In this document: positions 5,591 to 56,922 of the stretch, piece after piece | Layout: every line of letters starts with the position of its first letter | Numbering within the stretch: the first letter of the stretch is position 1 | Source of the DNA: Paragordius varius | Taxonomy: Eukaryota; Animalia; Nematomorpha | Direction of reading: 5' to 3' | Length of the DNA: 64,000 nucleotides | NCBI GenBank assembly: GCA_964247055.1 | Contig: OZ176051.1 | Location: forward strand, 7,812,001-7,876,000 | Made by a program: the position numbers and the translations under genes | Notes under the pieces: model-generated | Told to the model about the DNA's origin: nothing | Database searches by the model: none | The model's input: the letters and a program-made list of their open reading frames with translations, nothing else

Positions 5591-6065
5591 TCAATAATCT
5601 TGGTCTCGTAAGTAACAACCCAAAGTTTCAACTGTATTTGAACAGGAACCAGGCTGGATATTTTTGTTGTATGTGGCAATAATTAATGCTAAAATATAAA
5701 CGTTATTATAGAATATAAATAATAAAAGGCATGATACAACAAATAATTTACTTAAATTTGTTTTAGCAATTATTACGCCACCGTTACCCAACTTAAGACG
5801 CATAACATCGGAAGCGCATGATTGATAAATATATTTTTGACCACATAATCTAACACCATTGGACATAAGTTTATCTGGCTTTTCAAATCCATTTATAATA
5901 TCTTGAAGTTCTTGTTCCGAAGGCTAAATATAGATATAGCAATACCTTAAAATTAGGTGTGGACGCCCATATATCCAAATTTTTTAATCCAACAAAAGCA
6001 GCTTGATCAACATTACCTGAAGCTAGTAAATGATCAGTTATATATAAATCCCATGATTCGGCCAT
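5591..6065 (-). CDS. PFN: Profilin, 129 aa; exons 6065-5946, 5923-5752, 5688-5591; introns 22 nt and 63 nt
   Basis: Spliced protein MAESWDLYITDHLLASGNVDQAAFVGLKNLDIWASTPNFK/PSEQELQDIINGFEKPDKLMSNGVRLCGQKYIYQSCASDVMRLKLGNGGVIIAKTNL/TLIIATYNKNIQPGSCSNTVETLGCYLRDQDY is colinear with invertebrate profilins. Exon sum 390 nt. Confidence 0.95.
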
Positions 6066-7098
6066 CAAAATTATTTTATAATAGTCAAATTACAGGAAAT
6101 TGATTGGCTAACAACTATCTTATGTTATATTATTTCGGATGGTTAACCTGCTGAATAATTTGTTTATACTTGCTGGCGTATTTACATTGCGTCCGAGTTC
6201 GTGGTGTATAAAAATATCCTTATAAATATATAAAGAAATATAATAATTTATCAGAATAATTATAATTCTTTTGGTTTTATTTTTACGAGTTTAAGAAATT
6301 TAAACTTTTGTGGTAAATCCAGAAAATGGCAAATGCCCACATTTTGCTACATAACATTGACTAAACTTCATTTTAAATATCACTAATATATATCATAATT
6401 TATTTAAAGCAAAATATTTTTTATTAATTTTAATTTTGGATATAGACCCCAAAAGTCTTAATTTTCAAGCCCTAAATGAAAAGTTTCCTAAAAGTAAACA
6501 CAGTCAATATTGAAAAATATGTATTAAACACTGACAACGAAAAATTTCCGAAAAAATGGATATTCTGCTTAAAAATTCAAATTTTTTAAAATTTTGGTCA
6601 AGCGAATTTCGGTATTTTGAAGCATGGTGGAAACAAACCATTAAATCATCCATCAATGCAGAACATTTCTATTCTTTTATTTCAAATTTCGATAGTTTAT
6701 TTGTTGTAATGTTTAATTCTGGTATCAGATATGTTTAGTCTCATCGAATTATAAAAAATTTGCTTTATATACTGCGTCCAAATTACTGGTATAAACATAA
6801 CCTCATGAACGATATAGATCTGATAAGAAAATGTATCAGGATTATCAAGTGCTGTTAGTATTGGCCGTTAGTGAAAAAAAGAAGGTTATTTACAATTTTG
6901 TGGTAAGCGGTCCATATGGCAAAATAAAAGCATTGGTATTTAATTCCAAAAAAAATATATCATACTCAGGTTATTAAAAGCAAAACAATATATTTAAAAT
7001 ATTTTAAAATGTGAGCTCCGTAAAGTCCAAAATTTTTTTGCTCTTCTAAAATGAGCTAGTTGTAAAATAAACGCAAAAATGCCTGGATTGACGATAAA

Positions 7099-7377
7099 CA
7101 CTTGGATACAACAAATTTATTTCCCTGCGATTCAAATTAGAGTAGTTATATACCCCAGGCCTGTTTAAATTAAATATTTAAAATGTAAAAAATATTGAAA
7201 CCATAGTAAAAGTTGCACTTATAAAAAACCGAATATAAAAGAATAATTCAAAAATACTATTATTTATTTTAAGGTAAAACCGGTTAAAAATTTAGTCAAT
7301 TTATTTGTGCATGAGCAAAATTTTAAAAATGATGAAATATAAACCATTTTCTTTTCATCAATGTTAGATGTGATTTA
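7099..7377 (+). mobile_element. Partial copy of TTAA-flanked MITE family A
   Basis: Begins CACTTGGATACAAC and follows the first ~280 bp of the complete copies at 21661 and 41395. Confidence 0.75.
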
Positions 7378-7378
7378 G

Positions 7379-7893
7379 CACTTCGATCCAAATTGGGGTA
7401 TATAAATACCCCAGGCTAAATTGAAGTTAGGTTTCAAAAACTATTGAAGGAAACACCAATTTAAATATATGTTTCTATCCTAATAAAAATTAAAAAAATA
7501 TGCCAAAATATCTAAATAAAATTTTGAGTTCCATGTCAAACTACTTCGACGCCATTTTTATTTGGGTAAAATTTATTTTTTTATTTAAATTACATCTAAC
7601 ATTGATAATAATAGAAAAAGCGGCTTATTTTGTATAATTTTCAATTTTATTATTGCACACGTGTCACGTTGACCAAATTTTTACCTTTCGGTTTTAACTT
7701 AAAAACAATATCAAGTATTTTTGAATAAACTTTTTTATATATTTCGGTTTAATAATGTTATATAAGTGCAAAATTTTGCCATGGTTTCAATTCCTTCCAT
7801 ATTTTTTAAAGAATTTAATCTTAAACAGGCCTGGGGTATTTAACTACCCCATTTTGAATCGAAGGACTAAAATAAATGTGTTGTATCCAAGTG
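7379..7893 (-). mobile_element. MITE family A (piggyBac-like, non-autonomous), inverted copy
   Basis: Termini CACTTCGATCC ... GTATCCAAGTG followed by TTAA; subterminal GGGGTA-N6-TACCCC motif at both ends. Confidence 0.8.
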
Positions 7894-7974
7894 TTAAATT
7901 AAATATAGTCTTACCCCCAACAAATCGAACTGTTAATTACAGTGTGCAATAAAATTTGGGGCTGATTTTCTGGT

Positions 7975-8265: not shown

Positions 8266-8314
8266 TTATTATCTTAAATAAAAACTAACTTTATTTTATG
8301 TTTTTGGATGTATA

Positions 8315-10150: not shown

Positions 10151-10214
10151 TATATATTTAATACATATCGTTATCAATGTAAAATAAAAAAAATAATTTT
10201 CCTAAAAATTTTTA

Positions 10215-10650: not shown

Positions 10651-10687
10651 ACCGGTATTTATCATGTTGAAAGTAAATTATTCAATT

Positions 10688-13618: not shown

Positions 13619-14415
13619 ATGACCCATATGGGACGGGATTTCGACTTTTTTATGCCTGAAAATGCTGAGAAATCTTTTTTAAACGATTCCACAATATTTT
13701 ATCCACTACGTTCAAGAAGTAAAAACAAAGAAGAAGACTTATTTTTGCCACTCAAATCTCACACAAGAACTAATTTTTTAGAAACCGAAGTTCAAGAAGA
13801 TGATACGCTGCAATCATTAGCCTTAAAATATAACTGCAATGTATAATATATTTTTAATTGTAGATTAGTGAATTAAAGAGATTGAATAATATACTTAATG
13901 ACAATGAAGTGTTTTCTAAAGGAAAATTTAAGATTCCGTTTAATTTTCAAAACATAGATTTGTTGGAAAAAGAAAAAATAGAAAAATTAAATAAATTGCA
14001 AAATGAAAGAGAATCGTTTAAAAAAATAATCATTTCAGATGTAGAAAAACCCCCTGATAATTTTGAATCCATAGATCTACATTCAAAATACGTAATCAAT
14101 AAAGCGATTCAATCATTAAATAATTCCAAAACTATAGAAATTTTAGAGCCAAATGCCCCCGCCCAACAAGATATCTCTTTGATAAACGATGAATCACAAA
14201 ACCTTTTACCTAAATCTGATAGTCAGGAAATTGATATCAAATCAAATTTTTACAACATAAATGTCAAGAAAAAGACACCTCGTGAAGATTGTTTTCAACC
14301 TTCGGAATGTGGAATGAAACTTTGGATTGCTGTTTTGCTTATGGTGGCTATATGCATAGCATTGCCTTTATTAATAATCTTTTATTTTATTGAGGAAAAA
14401 TCATTTCCTCATTAA
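13619..14415 (+). CDS. LYSMD3: LysM-domain protein with C-terminal transmembrane helix (LYSMD3/4-like), ~257 aa; exons 13619-13840 and 13864-14415; 23-nt intron; start codon uncertain (alternatives 13628, 13652)
   Basis: Splicing gives an intact LysM motif EVQEDDTLQSLALKYNCN/ISELKRLNNILNDNEVFSKGKFKIP. Hydrophobic C-terminal segment LWIAVLLMVAICIALPLLIIFYFI. Confidence 0.85.
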
Positions 14416-17382: not shown

Positions 17383-17386
<4 letters not shown>

Positions 17387-29000: not shown

Positions 29001-32000
29001 TTATTCATCAATACTGGTCATATCATTTTTAAGTATTTTAAACACTGGTCGTATTCCACGTTTGGTAAAGGTTAGGTTGGCATATGGTAATTGAGCATTT
29101 ATCTCTTTCAATTTTTCAGGATGTTGTTTATAGTATTGTGGAAATATCGTAGGCCAATCCAATAAACAGCGTAATTCTTGTTCTGTCAATTTCTAAGTTT
29201 AGTAATTAAACCGTTAGATACAAATGTGTTGATTAAAATAGAAATGATAAAAGATATATATATAAAATTAACTCATATAAATTCTGTTGTGAATCGACAG
29301 ATTGATAGTTACCAATTTACTTTTCCTCTACTTTTTCGCAATTCAGGACGACAGGTTAGATTTTAAAAATTAAGGTTTGAAATGGTTTTTTTATCTATAA
29401 AATATTGTCTTTCGTTGTTAGGTCTATCTATTATTAACCCTGTTAAATAGAAATACTGAATGTGGTTTTAATAATGGAATCACCTATCTATTGAAACCGG
29501 CACCTGCATCGATCTTAAGAACCAATGTTGGTTAAAATGAATTCAAAAGTCTTGGAAACTTAATTTTTGTCTATATAAACAAATCCTATATATGAAGATA
29601 ATTAAACTAAAACCATAGGATCCTGCTTCACAGGTGATTTTGAAGTAGGCGAATGTAATTTATTAGCCTTAAGTGGTGATAATTTGCCATTAATTTGGGT
29701 CCGTGTCTTGTATATAGATGTATATTCAAGTTCATTCAAAATGTTCATGATTTCTTGTGCAGAAAATGGGATATTTACTTTGGACGTGCTAAAATTTTTG
29801 CGAGTATCTTTAAATTTTTCTAAAGATGTGTGCATTAAAGTTAAAGATTTATTAATAATGATAAATAATTTAAGAAGGCTATTTACATGCTTCTCTTTCA
29901 ATCAATTAAAAAATTTATTAGAAAGTCAATCAAAAATATTTTATGTAAAATTTTCTTTCGTAATGTTTTAATATCAAAATACTATATATAACACCCAACT
30001 ATTTCCAACAATTCGAATTAATTTTTACATTATTCTCCCCAAATATTAGCTAATTTTTTTGATTGAATGGTATTTTATTAATTATTAACATAATAAATAA
30101 AAGTTAGAGATAAATATATACTTATAAAAAATGCTTTACCTTTGGGTATTATCATTTTCTCCAATTTTTTCTTAGCAAACGCCCGATCCACCATAATTTG
30201 ATCGACCGTTCCTTCTGTGACCAATCTATAAACCACAACGGGTTTATCTTGTCCAATTCTATGGCAACGATCTTGAGCTTGTAAATCTGATTGTGGATTC
30301 TATGCAATAAATGATAATTAATTTATTCTAAAAAAAGTAATGTTTTTATATGCTATAGAGGTAACTAAAATATAAACTTTAAAAAAATAAAATCACACAA
30401 TAATTCGCAAATGGGATTTTTGTAAGTCAATCAAATGAATGGGTAAAAAATCCCTATATAGCATATATTGATTGATAAGAGAATTATAATAAATTCTTAA
30501 AATATGATTAAATATAATAAATTTTTTCATGGTGGATTTATAATTTATTCATTGTCTCAAATCAAATTAACTCATATTGAAAAAGTACTAGAGCTTTTCA
30601 AATAATTCTATCTTTATGATCATAAAAATTACAAACATATTTAAAATCGATTCGATGGTCATATAAAGCATGCACTGTATAGCGCAAATATTAGAATTTT
30701 AAACAAAGCTTTGTAATAAATTCTCGTATTTTTTCGACCAGTTTGTCCTAAATAAATTTTATCACATCTGCATTTCAGTTTACTGTTTTGACAGGTTCGT
30801 CGGTATTAGTTTTGTGTTATAAAATTAATTTTTATTTTTTTAGTAGATTTATAATCATTAATCTTCTTTTTAGATATTGGCCATTTATCTGCTACATAAT
30901 TTATGTATAAGTTAATTTGTTAAATTATTAATGGGTGAGGTTTTGAAAGTTTATGTAGGACGAACTGGTAGAAAAATGATTAAAAATTCTAAAATTATTA
31001 AAGGTATTGCGCAAAATCAGAGGATTTTGATTATGACCATCAAATTATTTTTTATATGTTAAAATATAAATTATAAAGATAGAAAAATTAAGAAACTTTA
31101 TAAAATACTACACATAACAATTTTAACGATGATTGGATACACCATAATATATGGTGAAAAATTATATTATAATTAGCACAATTGATGTTAATTCAATAGT
31201 TTCCTGTTAAATAGTATATTATAAATATTTTGCAGTAATATATACAGATTTTTCACTCATTCATTTTAAATTGAAATATATCCCCTTTTAAGGATTTTAA
31301 ACTATTTGTATTTTGATTTCAATTTTTAATTGGATAATTTAATAATTATTTAATTGATGTGAAAATTTATTAAAAAAAGCGTAATATACGTATAAAGATG
31401 GGTATCTACTAAGTATTAGCAACCAGCTAAATTTGACAGACACCTACCAATACCCTAAGAAAACACCTTGAAAAGTATAATTCAACATTTTATCTTCCAC
31501 CTTTTAAAAAACAACAGACCGCATGACAAAAAATAAAATTAATATGATACCCAATCGCTATCGAATATGATTACACAGCTTGCAGCTGTCAAGTTGATTC
31601 CTAAACCGCCCGCCCGTGTGCTGATTAAATACACATCGGTAGTTTGATCATTCCTTTCTTTGCTAGGTTTTTCGTGTTGAAAGCGTTCGATATCTTTTTT
31701 ACGATCATCCAGAGATGTTGACCCATCCAATCTAAGCATTAACATAGGTTATTTTAGAGACAAAGTACGACAAGAAGGACGGTTAATATAAATCAAGTTG
31801 TTTTAGACCCTTTTGTGAAACATACGCTTTAAGCAAAGTGTAATCAATCTTTATTTCTTATAAGTAAAATTTTATTAAATCATTCAATAATGTCACAAAT
31901 AATAACAAAAAAATATACCTGGCATATTTGAAATGTCTGTATTCACAATATTCTTCAAGAATGTCCAGCATCGACGTCATTTGTGAAAATAAAAGAACCT

Positions 32001-34831
32001 GTAAAATAAATATAAATTTATATAAACAAACATTTTTTAAACAATTGTAATGAAAAAAATTAATCTATATTTCAGTAAAACTCATATTTAATGTTAAATT
32101 AAGTTAGCGCTAACCTAAATATTTACAAAAAACACACCTTATGTCCTAATAATTTAAGACGAGGCAGGATTTGATCCAATATAACCATTTTCCCGGAACA
32201 TTGGATGAGTGCATCATTTACAGGGTAAGGCCATTTTTGGTCAATCAAGTATGGATGATTACTGCATTTACGTAAAGCCATCCATATATTATTACTGTTT
32301 ATAAGGGGTATAACAGTTACGATCGGTGAGTAAAGGGATGATTTTGTTTCATTTGATGAATTCTCATGATCGGATCTATGCCATAATTATAGCATATTAG
32401 ATTTTGATAACCAAAAAATTTTATTTAGAAGATTAATATTATATAACAATTAGAGAGTTATATATTTATTATATAAAATATATTTAAGCCATTCCGTTTT
32501 AAGTTAAAATATTAAAAAATTAAAAGGCGATCAGTAAAATCGGTTTATATTAATCAAAGGTAAATATATGTGAGATTATATATATAAAAATTACTCAGTT
32601 TCGTCTTCCAAATCAATTTCAATAGGTTTGGTATCAAAATATGCATTAATCATTTTTATGTCATATTTACAATGTCTCTTGGAACGATCCTTAGTGAAAT
32701 TATAAAAATATGTATATATCTATATTGTTAAATAAATATTGTAAAAAATTGTTAACATAATATAATGGTATTTAAATTTTAATAAATATAATATGCATGG
32801 TATAACTAATTACGCATTAAATCATTTTTATGGAAAACCATATTTATCCTTTTTTTTCAGTAACATTTATATGAATAATTATTTGAAATATACAGTTGTT
32901 TGCCAACTTACAAAAAATCCTATTTTCGGAACTTAAAAGGATAAAATTTAAATAATTGATTTAAAAAAAAGGTTATATTAAATAAAATTTCCAATAATGT
33001 TTATTTTCTCATAATTTAAGTATTATTGATATCCTATTTTATTTCCAAATCGCATTAAAGAAATATAATTATTTTTAAAAATGGATTAAAAATAAAAAAC
33101 TAATATTGTTTAATAATTATAATTCTATCGCAATCATTTATATATCAAAGAATTGAAAGTTTTGTTTATATAAACTTTTGAGAGAGTTCTTGAAAAAAAA
33201 TAATTAGTATTTGAAAATACCTTTTTGTCATGATTAGACAAAGTGTCAGAGTGGTGGTATTTTGATAACCAATGTTTGAAATTTTTAGCCAAGTCGACAT
33301 CATCCATATTATTTAGTGTGTGACGTCTCATTTCAACAATGTTAGATTCAATATCCATATCAAAGATTGCACGGTATAAATGATCTTGAAAAAGATCGGA
33401 GAGGGGCGTATAAACTAAAATTTCTTGTTTAGGTGGTATGTTGAAATCTACATCCATTTTAGTTCGTCGTAAGAGAAATGGTGCCAATATCTATTCAATA
33501 TTTAATCCATTTATCAAAAACGTCAATTTATAGTTATTATACTAAATTATTTTTCCAATTTATATGTAAGATAATACCATATCACTCGAAAATCGTTGAA
33601 ACGCTATAAAAAATTAATTCTTCAGGAAATAATTAATTAAACTTGAAAAAAAATTTAGCAATCATTTCTTTTTGTAATAAGTTCTCAATCTGTAAAAAAA
33701 ATAATTTATTGTTAACCTGATGTATCATATTTACGACTTTTTGTTGACGTTCTTTCAACACATTTGATAGGGTAGATTCTGATTTTTCTTCATTGGTATG
33801 GTCATTTTCACTTAATTGTGATTCTTTTATGTTACGAGTGAGAGCTGATATATCAAACCAAGAAACAAATCTAAATAAATATTATATAGTAGAATGTTTT
33901 TGTCAGTTTGTTTTGTAAAGTTGTTAACTCATATTTTATCAAATAATGTTTTTTTGGATATATCAATAAAAAAAGTATCGAAATGACATAAATACACCAT
34001 TTTATACCGATATATTTAACGACAGTAAAATTAGGTTATAAAATATAAAGGCAATATTCTAAAAAAATTACACTGATAAATCATCAAATATTTCTGGCAC
34101 CAGGAAATTAAGCAAAGACCATAACTCTTCAAGATTATTTTGTAGAGGTGTCCCTGTCATAAGCAATCGATTGGCAGAATAAAACGATTTAAGGATTCTA
34201 TTAATGGATTGAAAAAGATATTGAACCCCCCTTCAACATAATCAATTTTTAAATCAACAACGTTACATTAATCAGCTTATGTTGATTATGCACTTTTCTA
34301 ATAATAATTTTAGGTTATAAACTTATAAATTAAATTATATCTTTCCCACAAATTTAATGATTTAAGTAAAATGACTTCTTAACAGCCAAAAACGATTGAA
34401 TCAAAACCTTTTCAATTATATATTTGTAGAATAATAATGAATATTATAAAAAAACTGTATAATAATTAAAAAAACTTAAAAAAATATATTTTTTTCTTTA
34501 AAAACGGTCAAGTTGGGAATTTTAAACCATGTAAATAAGAGTAAGGAGTTTACTGTCAAAAAAAAATTTAAACAAATATAAAGGTTATTACGTAAACAAT
34601 TTGCAATTAAAATTTTTGATTCTGTGGCCCTCATCGATAACCAAGTAACGCCAATCAAATTTCTTGAGTTTAAATTGGTCATGAATAGCTATATCATAGG
34701 AGGTTAAAACTATCGGATATTTATTTATAGTAAGTGCATGTTTAATTTTTTTCAGCGCATTTGTTCGATTAGAACCGTGATAGAGTATGACATAAAGCTA
34801 TAAATACATATTATTGCAATGAAAATGAAGC

Positions 34832-34862
<31 letters not shown>

Positions 34863-37800
34863 GGATAACCAATAAAATTATTATATATAGCTAATTTAAT
34901 AGTTTAAAAAAGTATAATTCATATATTAGGAAAAAAATATCAATTTATTTAAAAAATACAAATTCAAAGACAACATTCACTAGAAGACTATTAAAATAAA
35001 TTACATGTTCAATTAATTAAATCTAAAATACCAAAATTTAATTATGTACGTAAATAGGTTGTTAAAAAGTTACATTACAATTTAAAATATTAATTTTTAA
35101 TTCAAATTATTGTTAAATTATTTATCTTCTCAGTTAAATAAATTATATAAAGAATAAAAAAGCCAAAATACATAGCAAATAATTATTTTTACCAGTTAAA
35201 TTCCAATATTTATTGATAAAATTATTTTCATCACCTCAAAAATTAAAGTTCAATAAAGGAAGTTAATATAATTTTTAGAATGATAATGACATTATGGAGC
35301 AGAATCATATATTTAAGGAGGAGAGTATCAATTGAAATCGCCGAAAAAGATATTTGAAAATAACCGAGATTAAAATAATTATTATACACTTTGCTTAGTT
35401 TAAGTTTTTAAAAATTCCAAAAATTAAAATATAAAATTTATTTCGAAAAACACATTAAATCTGCAAACATTATTGATTAAATTACCAAAATATTTGGCTA
35501 ATTCACCTAATAAATAAAAAATAATTTGGAAATATATTATAATAAATCTATATTTAACAGACTTCAGGCGCAAATCTTTTAAATTCTGAGATCCAATTTG
35601 GTAAAGTTGAAAGGGGTGCAACCACTATATAGGGGCCGGGAACTTGATGTTCTATAAGGTGACAGAAAAAGGCTATGCATTGCACTGTTTTCCCTAAGCC
35701 CATCTCGTCAGCCAATATTCCGTTTATACCATTTTCGTATAAAATCTATGAAAAAAAATTTCATCAATTATTGGTCCAAAATTGAAAAGTTGATATAGTA
35801 AACCCCTCTACCCATCCTAAAGATGTGGGCTTTTCAAAATGAACAGCGCCTAAATAGCTCATACACTTCCGATATTTAAACATAGTTTTTGCGTTAAAAT
35901 TATAACCTGAGTTCCTAGTATAAAACTCTTATAATGAGCCAAAAAATCCTAAAAATCCGTTGAATATTATTTAATTAAAATGGTAATTAATAACTAATTA
36001 TCAATCAGAAATTTAATTTTTTTATAAAAAAGAGTCGTGATATGAATTTTGATTCATTTTTTTAACACAGTCGGGTCAATAGTAGTATCAACTATATATA
36101 TACATATATTTGTGTACATATATTAAATAAGTAAAAAAAGCGAAGGACAGAAGTCTTATATATGTGGAATTAAAATTTGGTTATTATAAATCATCAAACC
36201 GTTGTTTGTCCAGCATGTGCTAGCTTCCAAATTCTTGAGCGAAATAGCTTGCGATCGAGACAATCGTCTTTGTTCAGTTGAGTTAAGTGTAAGTCATTGC
36301 TGAGTGTTTTTTCCCAATCATGGTATGGTCTGCCTCGTTTTAAATTGCCGTTCGGATGAAAGGATCTAATTTTGTTAATCCAACTATTTGAGCGTTCAAT
36401 GTGACCCCAGTATCTGTGACGATTTGCTCTGAGAAAAGAAGACATAGGTGCGATATGCAGATTATGTATGCTTTTATTATTATTTGTTTTATCATTGTGA
36501 TACTGATTGGTGAGGCATGAGTTGAGGATTTTTCTTTCTATGTCACATAATTTATTTTCATTAGTTTGGTTTAAGGGCCAACATTCGCTAGCATAGGTGA
36601 GGGCAGGGCGAATGGCAATCGTGTAGATTTTGCCCTTGTTTGGGTTTGAAATGTGTTTGTGTTTCATTATATACTTGAGTTGATGAAATTTGGCCCAAGC
36701 CTGATGTGTCCGTGTTGTTATGGCGTTTTTAATATTCATATCAGCTGCTATTGTATCACCCAGGTAATTGTACTTGTTTAATATTTCGATGTTTGTAGTT
36801 GGAAGGTAGGTGGTTTGTGTGGGATTATTTGGGTTTATATCTGGTGTTGCACAAGCTTTACATATAAAATTTTCAATTCCCAATAAACTTCCTTTAATTT
36901 GTGAGCACTTTTTATGGACCCACAGCTGGCATTTAGTGCATTTGATGGAATTAAGTTTCACTTCAGAGTGACAAATGGAGCAAGGAAATTTTATTACAGG
37001 TACCGGTGAGCCTGTTATTAAAGCCTTTGTTTTATCTGTGTTAATTTTGAGGCCAAATTTTTCTAAAGTAGATTTCCAGAGGTTATATTTATTGATAATG
37101 TCTGTTTCGCTGGTGGCTGTTAGTATTATGTCGTCAGCGTACATCATCTCAAAAGGTAAACCTGTTTTTATATTATCAGTTATTACATCCATAATGATGA
37201 TAAATAGTAATGGACTGAGGATGGAGCCCTGGTGTAGTCCGACAGTTACTGGAAATTGATTGGTATCACCCACGGGAGTTCTCACGCAACTAGTGGTGTT
37301 CTCATATAGTAAGTTTATTATTCTTATTATCCATTCCGGAATTTCTTTTTTTCGTAACGCAAATGTGATCAGGGACCGCGGGATGCAGTCGAATGCACGG
37401 CTTAAATCAATAAAGATGTGATATAAGGTTTTGTTTTTGCATCTGTAGTTCTCTTGTAGCCTTCTAAGAATGAATATGGCGTCAGAGGTGCTGCTCCCCT
37501 GTTGGAAACCGAATTGGTTTTCGTCAATCGAGCAAAGCTGACGTATTTTCTTTTCTATAATTATTTCGAATAATTTGGTTGCGTGTTCAAGTAATTTTAA
37601 TGGTCTGTAGGAGGCGCAGTTGAGCATGTCGCCTTTGTTTTTATATATTGGAATTAGGACACTTTGGTTCCAGTCGTTCGGGATTTTTTCCTCCATTATA
37701 ATCAGATTAAATAGCTCTGTGAAATAGGTAATTGCTTCAGGAATATTTTTGTACATTTCAGTTTTAATTTCCGTTGGACCAGATGCCTTATTGATTTTAC

Positions 37801-40306
37801 ATTTTTGCATGGCTAAACTCACATCTTCTGCAGTAATAATTGGGGGTGGCCCAATAACTGGAGGTAAGTTTGGGATTCGACATTTGAATGCTGGAAATTC
37901 AGTGTATTTTGCATGTATTGTGCCCATACATTTTGAATGCTAAGAGTGTCAGTAACTGTGTTGTTATTTTTATCTTTTATGGCTTTCACTACCCGAATAT
38001 CTTTTTTATTATTATTAATATATTTTAGTGTTTTAAAAACTTTTAAGTTTTTAATTTCTCCCTCAAGTTTTTTGGCCATTTCCAAACATCTTTCATTCAT
38101 TTTGTCAGCTATTATTTTCTTTACTCTTTTTTTAACCATTATGTAAAAATGTTTGTCATCATCATGTTTAGAAGCTTTCCATTTCTTAAAGGCATCTCTT
38201 TTCTCATTCAATAAGGGTTTAATATCGCTTTGCCACCACCATTGAGATTTTGTTTTGGTACGTTTTCTTCCGCAGATTTTGGAAACGTTTGAGAAAAGGG
38301 TGTTTTTGAGATGCTCCCAGCCGTCATGAACGATGTTAGGGGAATGTTTTAGTTCAGGTGTAATTTGGTTGATGTATTGATGCTTTGTTTTAGGATCATT
38401 AAGTTTTGCAACGTTAAGTTGTGGCAATTTTTTAGGGCTAGGTCGGTTCTTATTTATTATTAAAAAAGCAACTATTAGTTTATGTTGTGTATCATATTCA
38501 TAAGTTTTAAAGTTGGTTATAATTTTTCTAAGTTGTTGGTTCAGCAACACAAAGTCTATTTGCGATGTGTGATTTCCGCTTTTATATGTGTGGATTTGGC
38601 TAGGTTTTTTACAGAAGTGTGTGTTGCAAATCAATAAGTTTGCGGCACTGCAGAATTCCAAGAGGGTTTCGCCCTTTGTTGCGAGAGCCAATACCTACTC
38701 CACCGTGTATACCTTCATAACTATCAGCGTGCATTCCAATGTGTCCATTAAAATCTCCGCCGATCAGAAGTATGTCATTTGTGGGAACATTTTGTGCGAT
38801 CTGATAATGCTGATTCCAAAATTCCTGTTTGGTAGTTTCATTTTGACCCTGTTGAGGGGTATAGATGGATAGTATGTTAAGGGTGGTATTATTGAGAGCC
38901 ACTCGCATTTGAATAATTCTGTCGTTGTGACGTGTAATGTCAATTATATTTTCTTTTATCTGATCGTTTATGGCTATTGCTACCCCTGATTTTCCTCCTT
39001 CATAATACAGTGTAAAACCTTCATGTTGATAATTACCTCCGTTTTTAAAACGAGTTTCTTGTAAACAACATATGTCAAGCTTTTGTTCTTTAATCGCATT
39101 TATTATCATCCAAGCTTTTCCAACAAGAGTTCCGACATTCCATGTGCCAAATTTAAAGTTATTATTTTTAATATTAAATGATTTTTTCTCAGGTAACATT
39201 TCACTTTTCCGTAGATGTATTATAAATATAATATTATTATTATGCAGTATAAAAATATATAATATAAAGTTTCAAAGACGCTTTTATAAGTAGTATTTAT
39301 TCATTATTATTTCGCTGTTGAACATGGTAAAAGTAATGAGGCTTGATTTTTATAGACTATATGCCCTTATAGCCAACCTCTTAACTCGGAGGAGAGAGTA
39401 CCTTATTCGCTGTACCAGGCTAGAGAGTGTCTAAAAAGACTTCGAATCTCTCAATCCGTTTGTAGATTTAAGTCTACGGCCGAGGGAGGTGCCTTTCTGG
39501 GCTTTGGAAGCTCCCACTCCATCTTTCGTTTTAAGTACTTATATTATCGTTATTATCATCTGGCTGCTGGTTATAGCGCCCAGATAAACCCGCTTTAAAA
39601 CCATGTGTGTGAATACAGGCATTGTGGTATTTTGTAAGAAAATGAGACAGCCAATCTCAATTCCGCCACGCCCCACACACTAGTTTTCCTCCTTGTGGAT
39701 TGATGTTCATTGACTGTTCTTTACAAACAGTGCCGCTCCCGTTAGCGTTACCCGGGATGCCTCGCGAGGAGGTGGGAGTCCGTCTTTGCATCCCTTGGTT
39801 ATTATAAAATAATAATTATAAAAAAAGATAATTAAATATTAAGAGGTATGTGCATCAACGTTAAACCCGAATAATTTTATGCTGCTAAAATATATTTTAG
39901 GTAATATGTAAATAAATAACCGCATACCTTAAGCCATTCAACTCCCTCAATTTGGTAATCTTTGAGAGTTCCAATAAAATAGTTTGATTTATATTTTTTA
40001 ATAACATTTGATGACTAATATATAATATATATATAAAATACTTTTTGGATATTTAAATCTTTTTTTCCTAATGGTCTAAAATTATCTAATTTTTTTAATA
40101 GAAAATCGCTATAGTATTTGCTTTTTGTAAGCAATTCTTCTAACTTTTTAAAACGATTTTGTTCACTTAGTTCCTTATTTTTTAATTTTGCCTAAAAATT
40201 ATATTAACTAAACTTCTTCCAATTCTTTGTTAATAAAGCGCATATTTTGTTGCGATAATTTATCATCTTCTTTTTTCATGTTTGGCGTTAACTCTAAATC
40301 GCTCAT
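29001..40306 (-). CDS. HELLS: Lymphoid-specific helicase (HELLS/LSH, SNF2 family), 806 aa; exons 40306-40214, 40191-40042, 40014-39928, 35745-35563, 34797-34592, 34197-34072, 33870-33717, 33490-33221, 32689-32595, 32375-32138, 31998-31919, 31731-31551, 30299-30140, 29819-29614, 29192-29001
   Basis: Motifs in order: [19 protein letters not shown] (HELLS-type N-terminus), [142 protein letters not shown]. Exon sum 2421 nt. Confidence 0.93.
34832..34857. repeat. (AT)n microsatellite in HELLS intron 4
   Basis: Pure AT run about 35 nt from the 3' splice site. Confidence 0.95.
36191..39794 (-). mobile_element. Full-length RTE-clade LINE (3.6 kb): ~600-nt 5' UTR, single ORF (APE + RT + PHD-like Zn finger) broken by two frameshifts, 14-bp TSD; in HELLS intron 3, sense orientation
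   Basis: ORFs 38609-39199 ([26 protein letters not shown]), 37819-38691 ([15 protein letters not shown]) and 36194-37927 ([20 protein letters not shown]). Direct repeat TTGGTTATTATAAA at 36177-36190 and 39795-39808. Confidence 0.95.
39736..39794 (-). ncRNA. HDV-like (double-pseudoknot) self-cleaving ribozyme at the LINE 5' end; P3 imperfect
   Basis: GGGAUGC-AAAGACGGA-CUCCC-ACC-UCCUCGC-GAG-GCAUCCC-GG-GUAAC-GCUAAC-GGGAG: 7-bp P1, 5-bp P2, L3 UCCUCGC, P1.1 CC/GG, J4/2 GCUAA with the catalytic-position C at 39745. Confidence 0.75.
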
Positions 40307-40379
40307 ATTTAAGGCCTAATTTCGCGGAATTTTTTCAATAGTAAAACAATATGATAATATAATAATAATAATAAAACTG

Positions 40380-40980
40380 ATTATTTTAAAAGATCCCAAT
40401 TGGGGGATCTAAAGAATTAACCTGATAAATTATAAATATTCTGATAGGAAAATGTATCGGGATTATCTTGTGGCTTTTAGTTTTGTTACGAGTGATTTAA
40501 AAAAGTTATTTACAATTTTATAATAAGATTTCCATTTTCTATATGAAAGTTTTAATCTTAAATAAATTTTTTAGGTTTAAGGTAGATGCTTCGTTTTAAA
40601 AAATATCACTATATTTTATGAATTCCCTAAAAGCAAAACAATATCTTTTTAATATTTTAATTTTTTAATGTGGGATCCGGACGCAAAATAATTTTAATAT
40701 GCTATATCTTAACATCAATATTTTTAAAAAAAATACATTAAAAAATTTAATTTTCCACAAATTTTTATAGCGTGCTTTCTATTATTTTTATGCATGTTGG
40801 ACACGGTATAAAACGCTTTTATATATTGGAAAAACACTTTCTATATAATTCAATAATGCTGAACATTTCTATCGCTTAAAAATTATTATAATTTAGATGT
40901 TCGTTTAGTATATTTTGGTTAAAAAACTAATTTTTTATGACATAAATTTGAAGACGAACGAATATTATTGGTAATATAAA
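40380..40980. repeat. Dispersed repeat family J (related pieces near 1240-1340, 6740-7030, 12150-12260, 57640-57960)
   Basis: Shared blocks such as CTGATA(A/G)GAAAATGTATC(A/G)GGATTATC and CATAAATTTGAAGA(C/T)GAACGAATATT; boundaries approximate. Confidence 0.55.
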
Positions 40981-41394
40981 AAATATGATATGATGTTAAA
41001 AGGGAATTCTTATGTATATTCATATTGTTTATGATAAAGTTTTTATAAAAAAGGGATTAAATTTGAAATTGTATAATTATATAATATATCTTAGAAGTTA
41101 TTCACCCAGCGCAGTTTTACCACTTCAGTCCTTTCCATATTGAGGTAGTTATATATCACAGAGCTCAATTTCGAAAACAAACTATTGTTTTGAAGAGTGT
41201 TTAAGTCGAAATTAGGTTGTCAAGAAAGCTTATATTTTTACAGTTGGTTCTATAGTCTTATCATTCCACTTTTATGGTGGTTTTATATCCCAGAGCGATC
41301 TGTATTAAAAATAATATAAAATATCTAAAAGCTGAATTGAAATATCTATAGCCTTTAAGGCGTATTATACAATAAATTTTTATAACAAATTTAA

Positions 41395-41947
41395 CACTTA
41401 GATACAACACATTTATTTCAGTCCTTCGAATCAAATTGGGGTAGTTGGATAACCCAGGCCTGTTTAAAATTATGTATTTTAAAAAATTATGGAAAGAAAT
41501 GGCATGGAATTTTGCACTTATATAACATTAATAAACCGAAATATATAAAAAATTTATTCAAAAATACTTGATATCAGATATTTTAAGCTAAAACCGAAAG
41601 GTAGAAATTACGTCAGCGTGACATGTGTGCAATGGTAAAATTAAAAATAATACAAAATAAACCTCTTTTTCTATTTCTATTAATGTTAGATGTAGTTTAA
41701 ATAAAAATTAGCTTAAATTTTACCCTATAAATTAAATTTAGACGATATTTTGCAAAATAAAAATGGCGTCGAAGTAGTTTCACATGGAAGTTTTTTTCAA
41801 GACAAAATTTTATTTAAATATTTTAGCATATTTATATAATTTTTATTAGAATAGAATAAGTTTAAATTGGGACCGTTTCCTTCAGTAGTTTTTTAAATAT
41901 ATTAATTTGAATTTAGTCTGGGGTATTTAGATACCCAAATCGAAGTG
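41395..41947 (+). mobile_element. MITE family A, complete copy with TTAA on both sides, between the divergent HELLS and FKBP12 genes
   Basis: TTAA|CACTTAGATACAAC ... AAATCGAAGTG|TTAA. Confidence 0.9.
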
Positions 41948-42283
41948 TTAATAAATCACTATTGCAACAATTATTGTATATTATGATTAGAAAATGTAAA
42001 TTAACATTAAAAATTTCAGTCTATATTTTTAAGAAAAATTTGATAAAGCTTTTATCTTAATAATTATTTTTAAATTCAAAACTGTAGTTAATTTACATAA
42101 TATAGCTGATAAAATCTTTGCCAATTGTAAAAAGGACAAAAAAGTCAAAATATAATGGAGAGTTAAACTTTATATTCACTAAATTTGAATAATGATTTTT
42201 GTCATTTTTTCCAGTTCTCCTGGATAATAACGAAGTGGTAAAAATTACCCCATTACAACAGGTGATACATAAAAAGTGCATCC

Positions 42284-43395
42284 ATGACTTTTAAAGTAGA
42301 TACCATCCAGCAAGGACACGGTTCCAAGCCAAAAGCAGGACAAACCGTTACAGTACATTATACAGGTTTTCTTTTTTTAAATTTTAGGAACCTTAGAAAA
42401 TGGGAAAAAATTTGATTCTTCTCGTGATAGAAATCAACCGTTTAAATTTAAACTTGGTAAAGGAGAAGTTATAAAAGGTTTGTATTTTTTCAATATTAAA
42501 CATACATTATCGCATTTTTTATCTATTAAATAAAAATGACCGCAGTAGTATTGTTTGCTTTGGGTAGAAATTTCTCTAAATTAGTATTGCTATTTTTGTA
42601 TTTAGTCACATTTTTTGTTCAGATAACTGTTAAACCTATTTTACAATTACGTTATGTAAAATCCTCTGTATTTTATATTATGATAAAACCTTATAACACG
42701 CTTTTATAATACAAATGTATTATAGTTTTTATTTTAACTTACCACCATTTCTTCACATTTTCGACATTTTTGCGTTATCTAGTCTTTTATGATAAGATTT
42801 ATAATTTTATATGACCTTTACTTTCATCATGAAATATAGCAGAAACTTTTTATTAATTTGGTACCTGACCCTATCAAAATTTAGGAGAATCATAGCATAT
42901 TAATAATTTTTGGAAAAAACAAAAAAGCTTCAGACTGCGAACTAAAAGTATCTAAGTTATAATTTTCTTTTCGCTATAAGATTTTATATTCAATAATATA
43001 TTCGTTAAATAGGTGCCTACTTATAAAATGCATACAGAAAAAAATTGCGCGATAAAATTTCGAAAATATGCTATGATTCTCGTAAATTTTGTTCGTGGAT
43101 TCTGCATTAATTATAAAAAAATTTTGAATTTGATTCCTTTTAAATAAACCATATTTGAATCACGCTTTACATAATCTTAAATATTATGCTAGAGTGTTTT
43201 CTGTTCACCTTGTTCAGAAAAAGTAATTTTATACATTTTTTAGGTTGGGACCAAGGAGTTGCGCAAATGTCGAAAGGAGAAAGAGCCAAGATAACGTGTC
43301 CACCTGAATATGCTTATGGGAAGAAGGGATATTCAAATGTTATTCCACCCAATTCAACATTGACTTTTGATGTTGAGTTGATAGATTTTCAATGA
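42284..43395 (+). CDS. FKBP1A: FKBP12-type peptidyl-prolyl isomerase, 107 aa; exons 42284-42365, 42388-42477, 43244-43395; introns 22 nt and 766 nt
   Basis: [107 protein letters not shown]; exon sum 324 nt. Confidence 0.96.
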
Positions 43396-43629
43396 TATTT
43401 TTTTTCCAATAATCATGGCAATTGGACCAATAAATTTTTTGTAGTTGTAATTGTTTATTTATACACAAGTATCATAATAGTTTTGTTATTTTATAGGTGT
43501 TTTTGTTGAAACGTCTAAAATAAAGTCTTGAGTTATTTTGTTTATATGTCACATTATTAATACGTTCATGTCTTAATAGTGTATTTACATCAGGTTAACC
43601 GGCTGTATACAAAATTTATTACTAGTTTG

Positions 43630-46600
43630 ATTAAGCGAAGGCATCAGTGAAAAATGAGCTGACGATTAATATGACTCAAACCCTATTATATTCCTGAACT
43701 AAAAGGTAGCATATTATTTTTATCATCTATGGCAGTGGTACTCACCAAAAAAATTTGACGGGCCAAATTAAATATATTTTTTTTTCGAGGGCCATGAACT
43801 TTATACTGGCAAATATCCTATAGCTATTTGACACATATGCACATATTTAATACTTTAAATCAGCACAATGATTTTTTTGCGGATGTAATCCAGCTAAAAA
43901 CTCGTTTTTCACCATTTAGTTTAAAAAATTAAAATATTTTGATAACAATATTTATTTTGATATTAACCAATAATTTTTAACAAATTTGGTTTCGCCTCAT
44001 GACAGGCCAATCTTAATACGTCGTCCATATGATCATCGGTTAAGCGATTTCTGTATGTATTCTTGGCATACTTCATTAATATGCCGTCTCAAACGTGTAA
44101 GGGTAGGGAAAAACAGTTAGGATAACTTGAGCACATATTTTTATATTTTCATATTTATTTGGCACAAAAACTCTACATATATTTCTAATTTAAGATTCTC
44201 CTTGAATATAGCCTCCATATTGAAATTATATTTAAAATCTACGAATTTTTCAATGATAGCACCTGATCAAAACTGAAATCGGGTTGCTTAATATTGGATA
44301 TATCCATATGCCAGGGATTTTCAACGAATTTTAAGCAATATTTAATATTTTTTAATTCCTGAAATCTGAATTTCATCTCATTAGATAAAATTAAATAATT
44401 GTCTATAATTAAATTAATCTCCATTAGCAAATTGGATTATTATTTATCTCCCTTGACTGTATTTACAATACTAAGTTTATAAGTAATGTCACAAAGGTAG
44501 GCTAATAAAACCCACCATTTGTCACTATAATTTCCTCGTCAAACTTTCTGTTATCATTTATAATTAATATTTCATGTCTTAAAACAAAAAATCTATCATC
44601 TCACAGTGGTATACAAAAGAATATAATCAAACTCACTGTGGATTCAGAGGGTTTTTGAATTTACGGCGGTACAATCTTTGCCCCTGTGGTTTACTAGATC
44701 CACAACCCTTTTTAAATTACTGAGAATTGAGTATTCATTTTTACACTCGAAACCAGGTTTTGCTTATGCAGTGAAATGATCAAATATTTTGCAAATTATA
44801 CTTGTTTCTCAAAAGAGGAATAAATCCTTTGTTTCCAATCATAGAGGGACAGCCATCTGTGCAGATCAAAACCAATTTTTTCATAGACATACCATTATCA
44901 TCGAAAAAAGTGCTAATTATTCGAGAAAATCACTCTCTTTCGTGGTATTATATATTGGTAAAAATAATAAATATTCCCCGTTGATAATGTTGTCGTTGCA
45001 ATCATAAGAGCGCACACTGTGGAGCTGAACTAATATCAGTGATGAATCAATAGCAATACTAAAATATTTGCAGTTTTTCAGAGCCAATAAATATATTTAG
45101 ATAATGCGTCGATCACATGTTGAATCAGAAAATTGGAGTATTTTAATTACCTCATGATTAGATCTTTATTATGGAATTTATCAAATAAAAAAGTGCAACC
45201 ATTTATTAGACATTCTTTTATTAGTTGACAATCAGTAAACGGTTTCATATTTTTTCCTAAAATATAGCGAATTTCATACGAAGTTAATGTTACAGCTTTT
45301 TTCTGGGAGAAAGCTATAGACATAATAGATTTTTCTTCCTGGTATATTCCTTAATCTTTTATTCGTTTCTTTCCTTATGATTTTCTGGTTTGTGAGAATG
45401 CTGGATTGTAAAATGTCTTTCAATATTGTATTTTAATTATGTTGTCCTTACATATAAGGCAGGTGACATTTTTATTTAAGACGACAAAAATTTTTTCTTC
45501 ACCATTAGATGTCATCCTTTGAATTTATGTTTAATTGTGTAAATTTTTTTTAAAAAAAATGGGAATATAATTTGAATTATGCAATAAAAAAACAGATCAA
45601 AATATAATAATGTGATTTTTATAAAATGATGCAGGATAGCAATGAAAAGAATAAGTATATGCAGTTTTGGGTGAAAGGATTGCTTAAATACAAAAAAGGA
45701 ATGCAATAATTTTAAAATAGAAAAGAAAATAGAATGCAGAAACAAAAACAAAAACAACGTGTTCCAAAATTTTAAAATCATTTTAATGTAGAGACATTTT
45801 TCTACATTTCAAATTGGGTAAAAATAAAAATACCAAGTAAATTCAAATAAAATAAATTAATATTAAACTAAGCGAAAATCCGATTATGTGTATTTTAAAA
45901 TTTCATCAAAAAATAATAATAATTGTATCAATATGGTCATAGGGCAATTTTAAAGCGCTCTTAGGGCCGTATGCGGCCCGCGGGCCGCGGTTTGAATATC
46001 ACTGATCTATGGCTTATGCACCAAAAAAGGATCATTGGCTTATTTTTCTTATTACATTGGAATGTAATAAATTTTAAATGTTTAAATTGCTTAGACCCAA
46101 GCAATAATAATATTAATCGACCAAAGCTACTTAACATTGATGGACATGACATCGAATTGGTTGACTCTTTCGTATACCTAGGAGATGTCATATCATCTCA
46201 GGGAAGCCCACAAAAGGCTATCAAAAGAAGAATATAACAAGGTTGGATAAATTATAATCAGTTAAAATATGTTTTCCAAAACAAAAATGTTAACAATCGT
46301 AATAAATGGTATCTTTACAAGGTAGGAATAAAACCTGCTCTTACCTATGGTTCTGAAACCTGGGCATTAAACAAATCAAACAAAACTCCTAACCAGTGAG
46401 AACCGAATACTCAAAAGCTGCTTTCGCACACCAGAATTACCAATTTCCATTAAAAAAACCGATAAAATCGAATATATAATTCAAACTAACAGATTGCGTC
46501 TATACGGTCATACTCAGAGAAGAGACGCCACCCATCCGTTAAAAACTTTAACATTAATGTTGATGGCAATAGAAGAAAGGCCACTCTTTTCTTTTAATGA

Positions 46601-46712: not shown

Positions 46713-46717
46713 AATTA

Positions 46718-52779: not shown

Positions 52780-55700
52780 CTATTTGTTCACAACATCAAA
52801 AATGACGCCCGATTTGGTTAGATTCTCAATCAAATTCGTGTTTTGGAAAGCAACACCGGTTGTAAGCACACCACCACTATTTTTTTAGTATAAATTTTAT
52901 CATTTAAACAAAAAAAAAGTTTAAAAATGATTAGTTTATATTAGTTGAATTGTTATAACAATAATATACACTTACGGTTGAGGGAGTTTAGATCGTTCGT
53001 TTAACAAGGTAAGTGCGACATGGGTAGCGCATAAAGCTGTGGTTTTATAGGCATCTATAAATAAAATTTGATATAAATAAAAGTAGAGTAAAAACTGAAA
53101 TTATCCGGAGAAAACGTAAAGATATAAAGACAAATATTTTTTTCTGAAAGACAACCATACTTTTTTAAATCTAAATTTTTCATAAATAAAATATTTATTT
53201 ACAATCATAAATCATATAATTAAATGTGTTACCAATATATATATATATATATACATACATCCACTCCATGCTTTGCAATTTTTAACTATTATTTTTGAAA
53301 ATTCGAGATATAAAAAGTGTGGCTTTTAGAAAAAATATTTGTTATCCGTATAATTTCAATTTTTACTGTAATCAACGAATACAAATTAAAACGAAATATA
53401 TAAATTATAAAATATTAATAGAATAATACGTTATTCAATAATTTATCAAATTTATACCTGGCCCTGCAACTACGACAGTAATATTACCATCTGGCGGAGA
53501 ATTGGGTTGTAAAAGTGGATCATTTTTGATTTCTGGGTGTTTTGCATAAGTATATCCTTGGCCTACAGTAAAAATATAATATCGATTGACTGAAAGTTGC
53601 CATTACGAATAATTTCAACTATTATTGAAAGTATTTAAAAATTTTTTGACAAAAATGTTAAAAATAGAAAAGCTGGCAAACGTATTAATTTTTATCCATT
53701 CGCATCAACAGGCCTAAATAAATTAAAAGTGCTTTGGGGGTAGATATCCACGATATTTTTTTTACCATTACATGAATTACCAAAATAAGTGGCAAACTAC
53801 ATTAAATAGTATAATGCACTTTCCAGAAAAAATAACGATTAAATGTCCACCTAACGCAGAAAACTCATTAATATACTTTTTAAAATTTTATTTCTATACA
53901 TTAATATATAGTTGTAACTGTATTCTTTAACATAATATAAATTAATATATATTAATTATTATGGTCAAAAAAATAGTCTAGAAAGGTAAGGAGTTATAAG
54001 GAACTTAACTTTTATTTAATACCAAAAAGTGTACAAACTTATTTGGTAATAAGCACCTCTAAAAATTAATTACCAATCTTTTATATTATAACTAAAAACA
54101 TAAAATTTATACCTTGCATAATCCATCCAATTTTTTTCCTATTCAGATCATCTCTGGATGGTTGTGAATTAGGATCTACATATCCTCCCGTAAAATACTG
54201 AGGATACTGTATAAACAACAAATTAATTAATATAAATTATGTATATGTTAGGATAATTTTTCAGTTGAAAGACGAAAATTCTGTATAATGCGATTTCCAT
54301 TTAATTTAATTTAAATATTCAAAAGAGCTAAAAAAAATAAATGGATATTTTTAGATACACCATACCTTTTTCAAAATTTCTCTGGTGAAATTCAAGCGAG
54401 TCATGAGAAAAATAACGGCTCCTACAACGATAGTTACCAAGGCATTAATCAACGATGATACTTTAAAGTAAGGACGAAATTGAATCTAAATTACAATATA
54501 ATATAGTGATAAATATAAGTAAAGAGGAATTAATTTTCCTTATAAAAATCTCAAAATAATTATAACCGGTCGTTTATGTTCCTTTTCGTAAAAGTAATAT
54601 TGAGTTCTCGTCACAACCGATTTATCAGTCCCGGGAAACGGGACACACCATCCATCCCCATTACCTATGTAATCATAATAGGTAATATTTAAAATGTTAG
54701 AGCTAAAAATATATAAAGGAAAGAATGTGGTCTTTTATATTGTTAACCTGCTATTAAAAATGTAAAAGTTAGAGAGCTTTATGCCCTAGCGAATATGATT
54801 TGGACTATACAAAGATTGACCCTGATAAAAACCTCGTGTATCAAGCGTATATTATTGTTTAATAAATTATAAACAGTTTTTAACCACCTAAAATTGCGGT
54901 TTTATTAAAAATATTTAACTTATAATATAATACATTATGAGTCTTATGATCAAATCATATACTATTTTACAAATCTTCACCATAGAATTTAAAAACATTG
55001 AACATTTCAAATTTAACCTCGAACATTTCTATCACCCTTAAACATTATACACTTTCAAATATATTTATTTTGAACATAAAAAATTACAAAAAAAATCATA
55101 TTTTTAAAATTTTGTTGAAACATACAGTATAAATTAAAAATTATGGCCGAAAAAATGTCATATAATAGATGAGTTATATTAGCCCAAAACATATATTTTA
55201 ACTTTAGCGTGAATTTCAATTGTTGGAGGATGGATTCGAGGAGTAAATGTAGTTTAAACCGCAAACTAAAAACCAACTTCAAATACATAAAATTTGTATA
55301 TAACAGAACTGGATATGGCTTGAAACTAACCCGTTTGGAGTTTGGTTTTACAAAAACTACCGTTGTTTTAATTCTAATTTTTTACATTCTAATTTAAAGT
55401 AATACTCAATCAAATTTACATTCCTCAAAGACTAACCTAACTTGCGTTTAGTTCTATAATATAAAATTATATTAAAGTAATAAAAGCGATATTACTTTTG
55501 TGATGTTTTTCATCTGGGGGGAATGGAGGCAATCCTTGAGACTTAAAAATAATTGGATGATCCATCATAGGATACTGTTTATTAAACGGTAAACGTTGAG
55601 GCATCAATTTTTGTCTAACTTCCTTAAGTTGCCCATAATTGGAAAACCCCATGATTGCCGATAAAAAGGTGGCATAATTTATGGAAGGATGCTACAGTTA

Positions 55701-56922
55701 AAAAAAAGAAAATGGACGGTTTTTAGTAAATAAGATAATAATTTACTACAGCTCGTAATTTATAAATGGACAAAAAATCAAATTCGCTTCTGATATTAAG
55801 TCAGAAAGTATTTTTTAGGTCCATATATAAACAATTTTTTTTAAAAATAATTTATATATTTAATCAAAATTTTTTTAAAATAAACCTATATTTAATAAGA
55901 GTATAAACTTGCAATAATATATGACCTAAAGATTCAGCATTTTCTGTAAATTTAATTATTTTTTAGATATTTTAACCGTGTGAAATACAAAATTTCGATA
56001 AATATTTTGATGAATCTAAGCGAAAAATAGATATTTGACAAATCAAATTTAATATTCAATTTCGTTTGATGTTTTTAGTAAAAGTTAGTTTATTTAATAT
56101 CTAAATAATACAGTGCCAAATTAATTTTTATTACTTTATACTAATCTTGTTGACACCTTAAAAAACATTGTTTAATATTCCCGTAATAAGCTTAAAAAAA
56201 AAATTTTATAAAAAAATATATTCTACTGTATCCTTAATGGCAGTTGACTTTTGTTCACAATACGCCTCTATACGATCTAATTGACCTAATTATATTAAAA
56301 AAAATTAAAATACAAACACGTTTAATATTTTTATAAAAGTAAAATATACCATCAAATTGTTTTTGAGCATATAAAACGCCCATGTCGGCCAAAACGGAAT
56401 CAAACCCAGCGGCACCAATTATGGCTACTTTAGATTCCAAAGCTTGTTGATTGTATTTTAACTGATTTTTTTCCAAAACCTTAAATATTATTTCGTAAAA
56501 TAGAGATACTATACCAAAGTTTCTCCACATAAATCAATATAATCGGTTCCATTTTCGATACACGCTTTAACCACCGGTTCGCCATAAAAAAGGTACTAAC
56601 GATATTATAATTTAACAAACCGGTCCAACACAATTTATGAGTAGACGAGTATCCGAACAAACTTCTTTCAATGATTTCTCATCCTTAACATCCGCATATA
56701 AAACTGGAATATCCTTAAGGTCAATACCTTTTAATTTAATGTAAAGTAACCTGTATTATTTGATGCGGTTGTAAGAGCTTCGTGCAATTTTGTTTTATTC
56801 CTGCCAGAAACAGCCCATTTCATCGGCGGTTTTTCAGCCTTGGCTAATTCTTCAATTATGAAAACTGCGGAAAAGCCACTTGCACCAAATATTACTATGT
56901 CAAATTTTTTTGTCGTATTCAT
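52780..56922 (-). CDS. SCCPDH: Saccharopine dehydrogenase-like oxidoreductase, 445 aa; exons 56922-56751, 56727-56621, 56595-56515, 56479-56350, 56285-56227, 55691-55496, 54664-54567, 54485-54366, 54206-54113, 53562-53458, 53054-52976, 52876-52780
   Basis: FDIVIFGASGFSA, WAVSGRNKTKL, LINCVGP/YLFYGEPVVKACIENGTDYIDLCGE, GAAGFDSVLADMG, VPFPGTDKSVVTRTQ, MQGQGY, VAGPDAYKTT, P/GGVLTTGVAF; exon sum 1338 nt. Confidence 0.93.
53086..53368. mobile_element. Tc1-like MITE family K in SCCPDH intron 10 (relatives near 4120, 24074, 60116)
   Basis: TA|GAGTAAAAACTGAAATTATCCGGA ... TCCGTATAATTTCAATTTTTACTG|TA. Confidence 0.75.
54990..55260. mobile_element. Degenerate MITE family F copy in SCCPDH intron 6
   Basis: Shares the ATCACCCTTAAAC and GAGTTATATTAG...GTGAATTTCAATTGTT blocks with 18858-19137. 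Confidence 0.55.

Follow-up and report, generated by a model that had tools for sequence, protein, structure and literature searches.

Spliceosomal introns shorter than about 30 bp were previously thought to be absent in animals (PMC13644364, Mol Biol Evol, Sept 2026). That survey of 51 animal genomes detected introns <30 bp only in the Myxobolidae and in Dicyema japonicum. The genomes of both are small and reduced. Median intron lengths of 22-27 bp were reported there for Henneguya salminicola, Thelohanellus kitauei and Myxobolus rasmusseni. Neither nematomorphs nor rotifers are mentioned in the survey. A literature search on Nematomorpha together with intron length or short introns gave nothing relevant among the top results, and the word intron is never used in the Gordionus genome paper and the comparative nematomorph preprint. 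Here, a window of 64,000 nucleotides (nt) of the hairworm Paragordius varius (assembly GCA_964247055.1, contig OZ176051.1, positions 7,812,001 to 7,876,000) was analysed. A first-pass annotation of this window had proposed seven GT-AG introns of 22-27 nt and an additional intron of 35 nt in five conserved genes, coding for profilin, a LysM-domain protein (LysMD), the helicase HELLS, FKBP12 and SCCPDH. Judged by sequence and homology, the eight segments are very probably genuine GT-AG spliceosomal introns of the U2 type. P. varius would then represent a third animal lineage with introns <30 nt, beside dicyemids and myxobolids. The annotation had placed their size far below the accepted minimum for bilaterian introns, in agreement with the literature (PMC13644364).

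All eight segments had GT..AG ends on the coding strand, exactly at the positions given in Table 1. If retained, each of them shifts the frame or runs into an in-frame stop after a few codons, and a premature stop results in 8/8 cases. GT..AG ends are found in about 0.17% of random segments of 22-35 nt from the window. The probability that all eight segments carry them by chance at sites fixed by homology is about 6e-23, or 2e-17 if five placements are allowed for each. Only one of the eight lengths, 27 nt, is divisible by three, and this intron carries a stop; eight introns are too few for a test of this feature. The micro-introns contained 7-23% G+C versus 33% in the exons. Their 5' splice sites were weak (GTAT, GTTT or GTTA), a trait shared by the long introns of these genes. 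The U12-type donor /RTATCCTT was not found, as the GTAT, GTTT and GTTA donors had no following ATCC. A T-rich run preceded the AG, and TTAAT or TTAAAT-like motifs were located 5-10 nt upstream in most segments, which is weak evidence at 15% G+C.

Removal of the segments restored the conserved reading frames of all five genes, as the first-pass annotation had claimed. Homology of the encoded proteins extended over the junctions, and HELLS intron 2 was supported by the bypass of a stop. Residues 4-96 of the spliced profilin aligned to solved profilins with an E-value of 5e-13 and without a gap at the junction. Only after splicing was the LysM domain PF01476 complete, with 33.1 bits over profile positions 3-43 of 43; the score of exon 1 by itself was 14 bits, and exon 2 gave no match. 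The LysMD product had a C-terminal membrane helix, like LYSMD3/4. The N-terminus of spliced SCCPDH gave a single match to PF03435 (residues 9-140 to profile positions 1-128 of 129, 56 bits), and no single exon matched PF03435 at the cutoff. In comparison with ten orthologues, all three short-intron junctions of SCCPDH were free of gaps. The orthologues carry the source name saccharopine dehydrogenase-like oxidoreductase, and no relative of SCCPDH was present among solved structures. In HELLS, exon 2 encodes the N-terminal motif specific for DDM1/HELLS and exon 3 the start of the helicase core; the N-terminal motifs match the DDM1 and human HELLS structures. The alignment of human HELLS (9z04) with residues 6-68 crossed the junction of intron 1 and had no gap there. 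For the connection of exon 2 with the DEXH-box exon 3, the 27-nt intron 2 was the unique GT/GC-AG solution. The FKBP12 product was 66-81% identical to FKBP12 of many animals.

Intron boundaries were determined independently with our own protein-to-genome spliced aligner, which required GT..AG, considered three phases and allowed introns down to 15 nt. Three orthologues were aligned for FKBP12 and eight for SCCPDH, the latter from mites, spiders, cephalopods, flatworms and protists. Both FKBP12 introns were chosen with 3/3 orthologues and the first three SCCPDH introns with 8/8 (coordinates in Table 1). When introns <40 nt were barred, the FKBP12 score dropped by 57 to 97 and read-through of a stop was forced. 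Barring the short introns of SCCPDH reduced its score by 100 to 140. At four control loci of known structure, the annotated introns were recovered and no intron was placed in the intronless gene. Spurious introns <30 nt did not occur in any of 16 control alignments.

Several short introns occupied the positions of introns in other phyla. FKBP12 intron 1 shared position and phase with introns of 49 nt in the rotifer Adineta steineri, 1,311 nt in the sea urchin Lytechinus variegatus and 86 nt in the sea anemone Actinia tenebrosa. The long FKBP12 intron 2 corresponded in position and phase to a 544-nt intron of Actinia tenebrosa. SCCPDH introns 2 and 3 shared codon and phase with introns of 276 nt and 37 nt, respectively, in the flatworm Cichlidogyrus casuarinus. 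Two SCCPDH genes were uninformative on position: that of Oppia has lost the introns of its N-terminal part, and that of Argonauta has no introns. Because codon and phase are shared with introns of other phyla, the tiny segments would be shrunken ancient introns and not insertions. On these comparisons, several of the short introns appear to be reduced versions of ancient introns.

Public runs X2, X5, X3 and X6 were mapped on positions 39500-43900. A contig of X2 covering 39732-40260 spanned both HELLS micro-introns with 0 differences. A contig of X5 (42326-48) carried the FKBP12 segment with its own variants. The first-pass annotation had named assembly indels as an outcome that would speak against its proposal; the X2 and X5 contigs retain the HELLS and FKBP12 segments. 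No deletion or joint was listed at any micro-intron of the mapped region in the four DNA runs. The DNA contigs speak against assembly error and give no hint that the segments are removed from DNA. Sample S3 (X4, X5) had 23-44% of 31-letter words in common with the window, corresponding to a divergence of about 5%. In S3, FKBP12 intron 1 had a one-base insertion, which made it 23 nt long, and a T>C exchange. All four differences in FKBP12 exon 2 affected third codon positions when read in the spliced frame; three were synonymous and one exchanged Leu for Phe. Since a length change of 1 nt is tolerated and the exon changes fall on third positions, the segment is intron-like and the flanking exon is constrained as protein in the frame that exists only after splicing. 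That S3 bears the same species label despite a divergence of about 5% points to a cryptic lineage or to mislabelling of a sister species.

The introns of 22-35 nt form their own size class. In profilin, LysMD, FKBP12, SCCPDH and HELLS, intron sizes jumped from 35 to 63 nt, with none in between. The short introns were always the first one to three of a gene and lay within 360 nt of the ATG. Together, the five genes contained seven introns <30 nt and about 20 of 35-4,182 nt, so that the tiny ones made up about a quarter and the median intron of these genes was not below 30 nt. The co-occurrence with long introns in a repeat-laden genome, as put forward in the first-pass annotation, was confirmed: these genes also have long introns, which range from 63 to 4,182 nt, and a long interspersed nuclear element (LINE) is harboured by one of them. 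This LINE (36194-39199) encodes an endonuclease, a reverse transcriptase and a PHD domain and marks the window as repeat-rich. The G+C content of the window was 27.5%. High-copy repeats were located between HELLS and FKBP12 and directly past FKBP12. The stretches 41411-41998 and 43616-43900, at thousands of times the depth of single-copy DNA, belong to repeat families whose copies number in the hundreds to thousands. In the DNA runs, word depth was 3e5 to 2e6 in these two stretches and also at 39500-39793 and 40382-40528, versus 350-760 in single-copy sequence. With a LINE within a HELLS intron and repeats at thousands of copies, the genome does not appear small, reduced and repeat-poor. The Logan contig sets of the species are about 170-280 Mb in size. 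For the hairworm Gordionus montsenyensis, a genome of 287.6 Mb with 26.93% G+C and 63.79% repeats has been published, and the window is similar to it in G+C content (27.5% vs 26.93%) and in its heavy repeat load. With well-conserved proteins and long introns that bear transposons, the window is unlikely to derive from a myxozoan or a dicyemid. As tiny introns occur in a repeat-rich genome beside introns of kilobase size, genome compaction is not the whole explanation for their length.

Splicing of both classes may be performed by the same spliceosome, with the short intron defined as a unit. At a length of 22 nt, the branch point would lie about 5-10 nt before the AG, at a TTAAT or TTAAAT-like motif. 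Some 10-15 nt would then be left between branch point and 5' splice site, where U1 and U2 could hardly fit together, unlike in textbook splicing. Proximity to the cap may aid the recognition of weak 5' sites that read GTAT or GTTT instead of GTAAGT. A retained intron would bring a premature stop, and the unspliced message might be destroyed by nonsense-mediated decay.

Several points weigh against the interpretation of the segments as genuine introns of 22-35 nt. Position homology was established for 3/8 short introns, namely those for which orthologous loci were compared. HELLS intron 2 is located in an unconserved linker and its boundaries follow only from the stop bypass, which makes it the least anchored of the eight. 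Runs X2, X5, X3 and X6 behaved as DNA, with even depth across introns and intergenic DNA and no splice joints. The RNA-labelled runs of the species contained 0 sampled words from either of the stretches searched, one of which comprised SCCPDH exons 1-4. We infer the branch point, the contribution of the cap and the nonsense-mediated decay. Frame-keeping alternatives of 31-53 nt were available for LysMD (38 nt), HELLS intron 1 (40 or 43 nt), FKBP12 (31 nt), SCCPDH intron 2 (34 nt) and SCCPDH intron 3 (53 nt). The closest named relatives of FKBP12 were bdelloid rotifers with 74-81% identity, sharing the FKVDTI start and the TCPPEYAYG stretch, which is odd for a hairworm. This likeness may just reflect shared AT-rich composition and a lack of named hairworm proteins in the collection.

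The frame-keeping alternatives give rise to a rival explanation, according to which the introns are real and some boundaries differ, for example by use of alternative acceptors. Every one of these alternatives would cost residues conserved among orthologues or in the Pfam profile, and the aligner never favoured them, so that shifted boundaries are unlikely. A second explanation is removal at the DNA level, by analogy to the short internal eliminated sequences of ciliates, in somatic cells. Programmed DNA elimination occurs in some nematodes, and the size of 22-35 nt and the AT-richness of the segments resemble the shortest eliminated sequences of ciliates. However, the ends are GT..AG and not TA..TA, and the positions are homologous to ordinary introns in other lineages. 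The deleted form was absent from the four DNA runs, although contigs can hide rare forms. Elimination from DNA is therefore very unlikely.

Alternatively, the genes could be decaying pseudogenes in which frameshifting insertions resemble introns. This would fit the lack of the sampled gene words in the RNA-labelled runs. It would also fit the protein collection, where searches with FKBP12, profilin and SCCPDH exon 1 detected no spliced product from the species or a close relative: FKBP12 had no match >81%, profilin no words in common with any candidate, and SCCPDH exon 1 no candidate. The GT..AG ends at homology-fixed sites in 8/8 segments argue against decay, as do the three segments located exactly at intron positions of other phyla. 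The remaining exons of these five single-copy housekeeping genes were all intact, and the four lineage differences in FKBP12 exon 2 all affected third codon positions. Pseudogenes were thus considered highly improbable. The probability of spurious insertions from assembly or sequencing is close to nil: the segments are AT-rich and of low complexity and 40016-40042 was flagged in read mapping as a repeat with apparently cut reads, but the HELLS and FKBP12 segments are held by contigs of independent DNA runs and insertion errors would not bear GT..AG ends.

Table 1. Genes and introns of the five loci with short introns. Coordinates refer to the window; lengths are in nt.
Feature	Coordinates	Strand	Length	Phase	Basis or remark
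Profilin gene, coding sequence with stop, 3 exons	5591..6065	-			Spliced product compared with solved profilins
Profilin intron 1	5924..5945	-	22	0	120 nt past the ATG; sole GT-AG solution joining both frames
Profilin intron 2	5689..5751	-	63	1	Gene model
LysM-domain membrane protein gene, LYSMD3/4-like, 2 exons	13652..14415	+			
LysMD intron	13841..13863	+	23	0	Sole intron of the gene
HELLS/DDM1-type SNF2 helicase gene, 3' end approximate	29004..40306	-			Conserved SNF2 exon blocks, N-terminal motifs; intron lengths 5' to 3': 22, 27, 4,182, followed by some ten introns of roughly 140-1,250 (from block spacing only, unrefined model)
HELLS intron 1	40192..40213	-	22	0	Human HELLS alignment over the junction
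HELLS intron 2	40015..40041	-	27	0	In frame, ends TAG; stop bypass
HELLS intron 3	35746..39927	-	4,182		Sense-oriented LINE inside (open reading frames 36194-39199)
FKBP12 gene, coding sequence with stop, 3 exons, 107 amino acids	42284..43395	+			
FKBP12 intron 1	42366..42387	+	22	1	Splits Gly codon after HYT; spliced aligner, position homology
FKBP12 intron 2	42478..43243	+	766	1	
SCCPDH (saccharopine dehydrogenase-like oxidoreductase) gene, about 12 exons	52780..56922	-			Intron lengths 5' to 3': 23, 25, 35, 64, 535, about 700, 81, 159, about 560, 403, 99
SCCPDH intron 1	56728..56750	-	23	1	8/8 orthologues; sole GT-AG solution
SCCPDH intron 2	56596..56620	-	25	0	After residue 93; 8/8 orthologues
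SCCPDH intron 3	56480..56514	-	35	0	After residue 120; 8/8 orthologues
SCCPDH intron 4, less certain	56286..56349	-	64	1	5/8 orthologues

Other features of the window were recorded alongside. Profilin intron 2 was in frame and free of stops, and its retention would add 21 residues, unlike that of all eight short introns. The FKBP12 gene of the sea urchin carried a U12-type AT-AC intron with the donor ATATCCTT between V and IPP (L002:11161-14479), and a U12-type AT-AC intron at the same site was judged by eye in the sea anemone FKBP12 (L003, about 2204-2547). The FKBP12 gene of the window (43244-43392) had no intron at that site, and two other ancestral FKBP12 introns were also absent. An open reading frame first taken for a HELLS exon was assigned to the reverse transcriptase of the LINE by its domain content. 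Exact look-ups of the LINE open reading frame, P0226 and P0163 found no record. A single-exon open reading frame of 279 amino acids with several membrane helices was located at 59089-59928 on the reverse strand; an upstream exon may be missing. It had no match in Pfam, and the protein atlas related it to rhodopsin-type or Srw-like invertebrate receptors with a score of 0.93. No Rfam family was detected in the whole window at gathering thresholds. Long palindromes or hairpins in mitochondrial genes are described as a hairworm trait in PMC10380579.

One spliceosome would have to cope with a 200-fold range of intron lengths in the same transcript. Strict confinement of the tiny introns to the 5' end reverses the usual rule that the first intron is the longest and offers a handle on minimal intron recognition. 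The present analysis added a controlled spliced alignment, showed that intron positions are shared with four other phyla, drew on a diverged sample and detected no deleted form at the DNA level. By default, AUGUSTUS rejects introns <39 nt. If gene finders reject such introns, genes like these would be truncated or split in annotation. In one of two hairworm genome papers, 71.6% of the universal animal genes were found and 10,320 genes were reported. Tentatively, two splicing regimes could coexist in the same genes, a cap-near class of 22-27 nt, recognised without U1 and U2 sitting next to each other, and ordinary long introns filled with transposons. Part of the extensive loss of universal animal genes reported for hairworms would then be an annotation artefact, a combination which we regard as possible and rather doubtful.

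Among described systems, the introns of myxobolids share with those of the window the conserved exon-intron junctions and the compatibility with a canonical U2 spliceosome (PMC13644364). They differ in setting: myxobolids have fast-evolving, reduced cnidarian gene sets in which neighbouring introns are short as well, whereas the window encodes conserved proteins (FKBP12 81% identical to rotifer) and the neighbouring introns reach thousands of bases. Dicyema japonicum resembles P. varius as an animal and a parasite with GT-AG introns <30 nt and weak splice-site motifs (Lu et al. 2019 and Zverkov et al. 2019, as cited in PMC13644364). Dicyemids have almost exclusively tiny introns and a small, reduced genome, whereas the tiny introns of the window are confined to the 5' end beside transposon-bearing introns of kilobase size. 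The ciliates Paramecium and Nyctotherus have introns of about 25 nt (PMC5014332), matching the window in size class, and the idea that a premature stop must follow from retention also fits the eight short introns. They are unicellular and all their introns are tiny, whereas the genes of the window also have long introns. Human ultra-short introns of 43-65 nt (PMC4463651) provide a case in which one spliceosome handles very short and very long introns, as would apply to the window. For short introns, splicing dependent on SPF45/RBM17 (PMC8363638) points to a possibly separate 3' splice-site factor. The human lower limit is about twice that of the window, and the human cases are rare oddities, whereas the introns of the window form a class.

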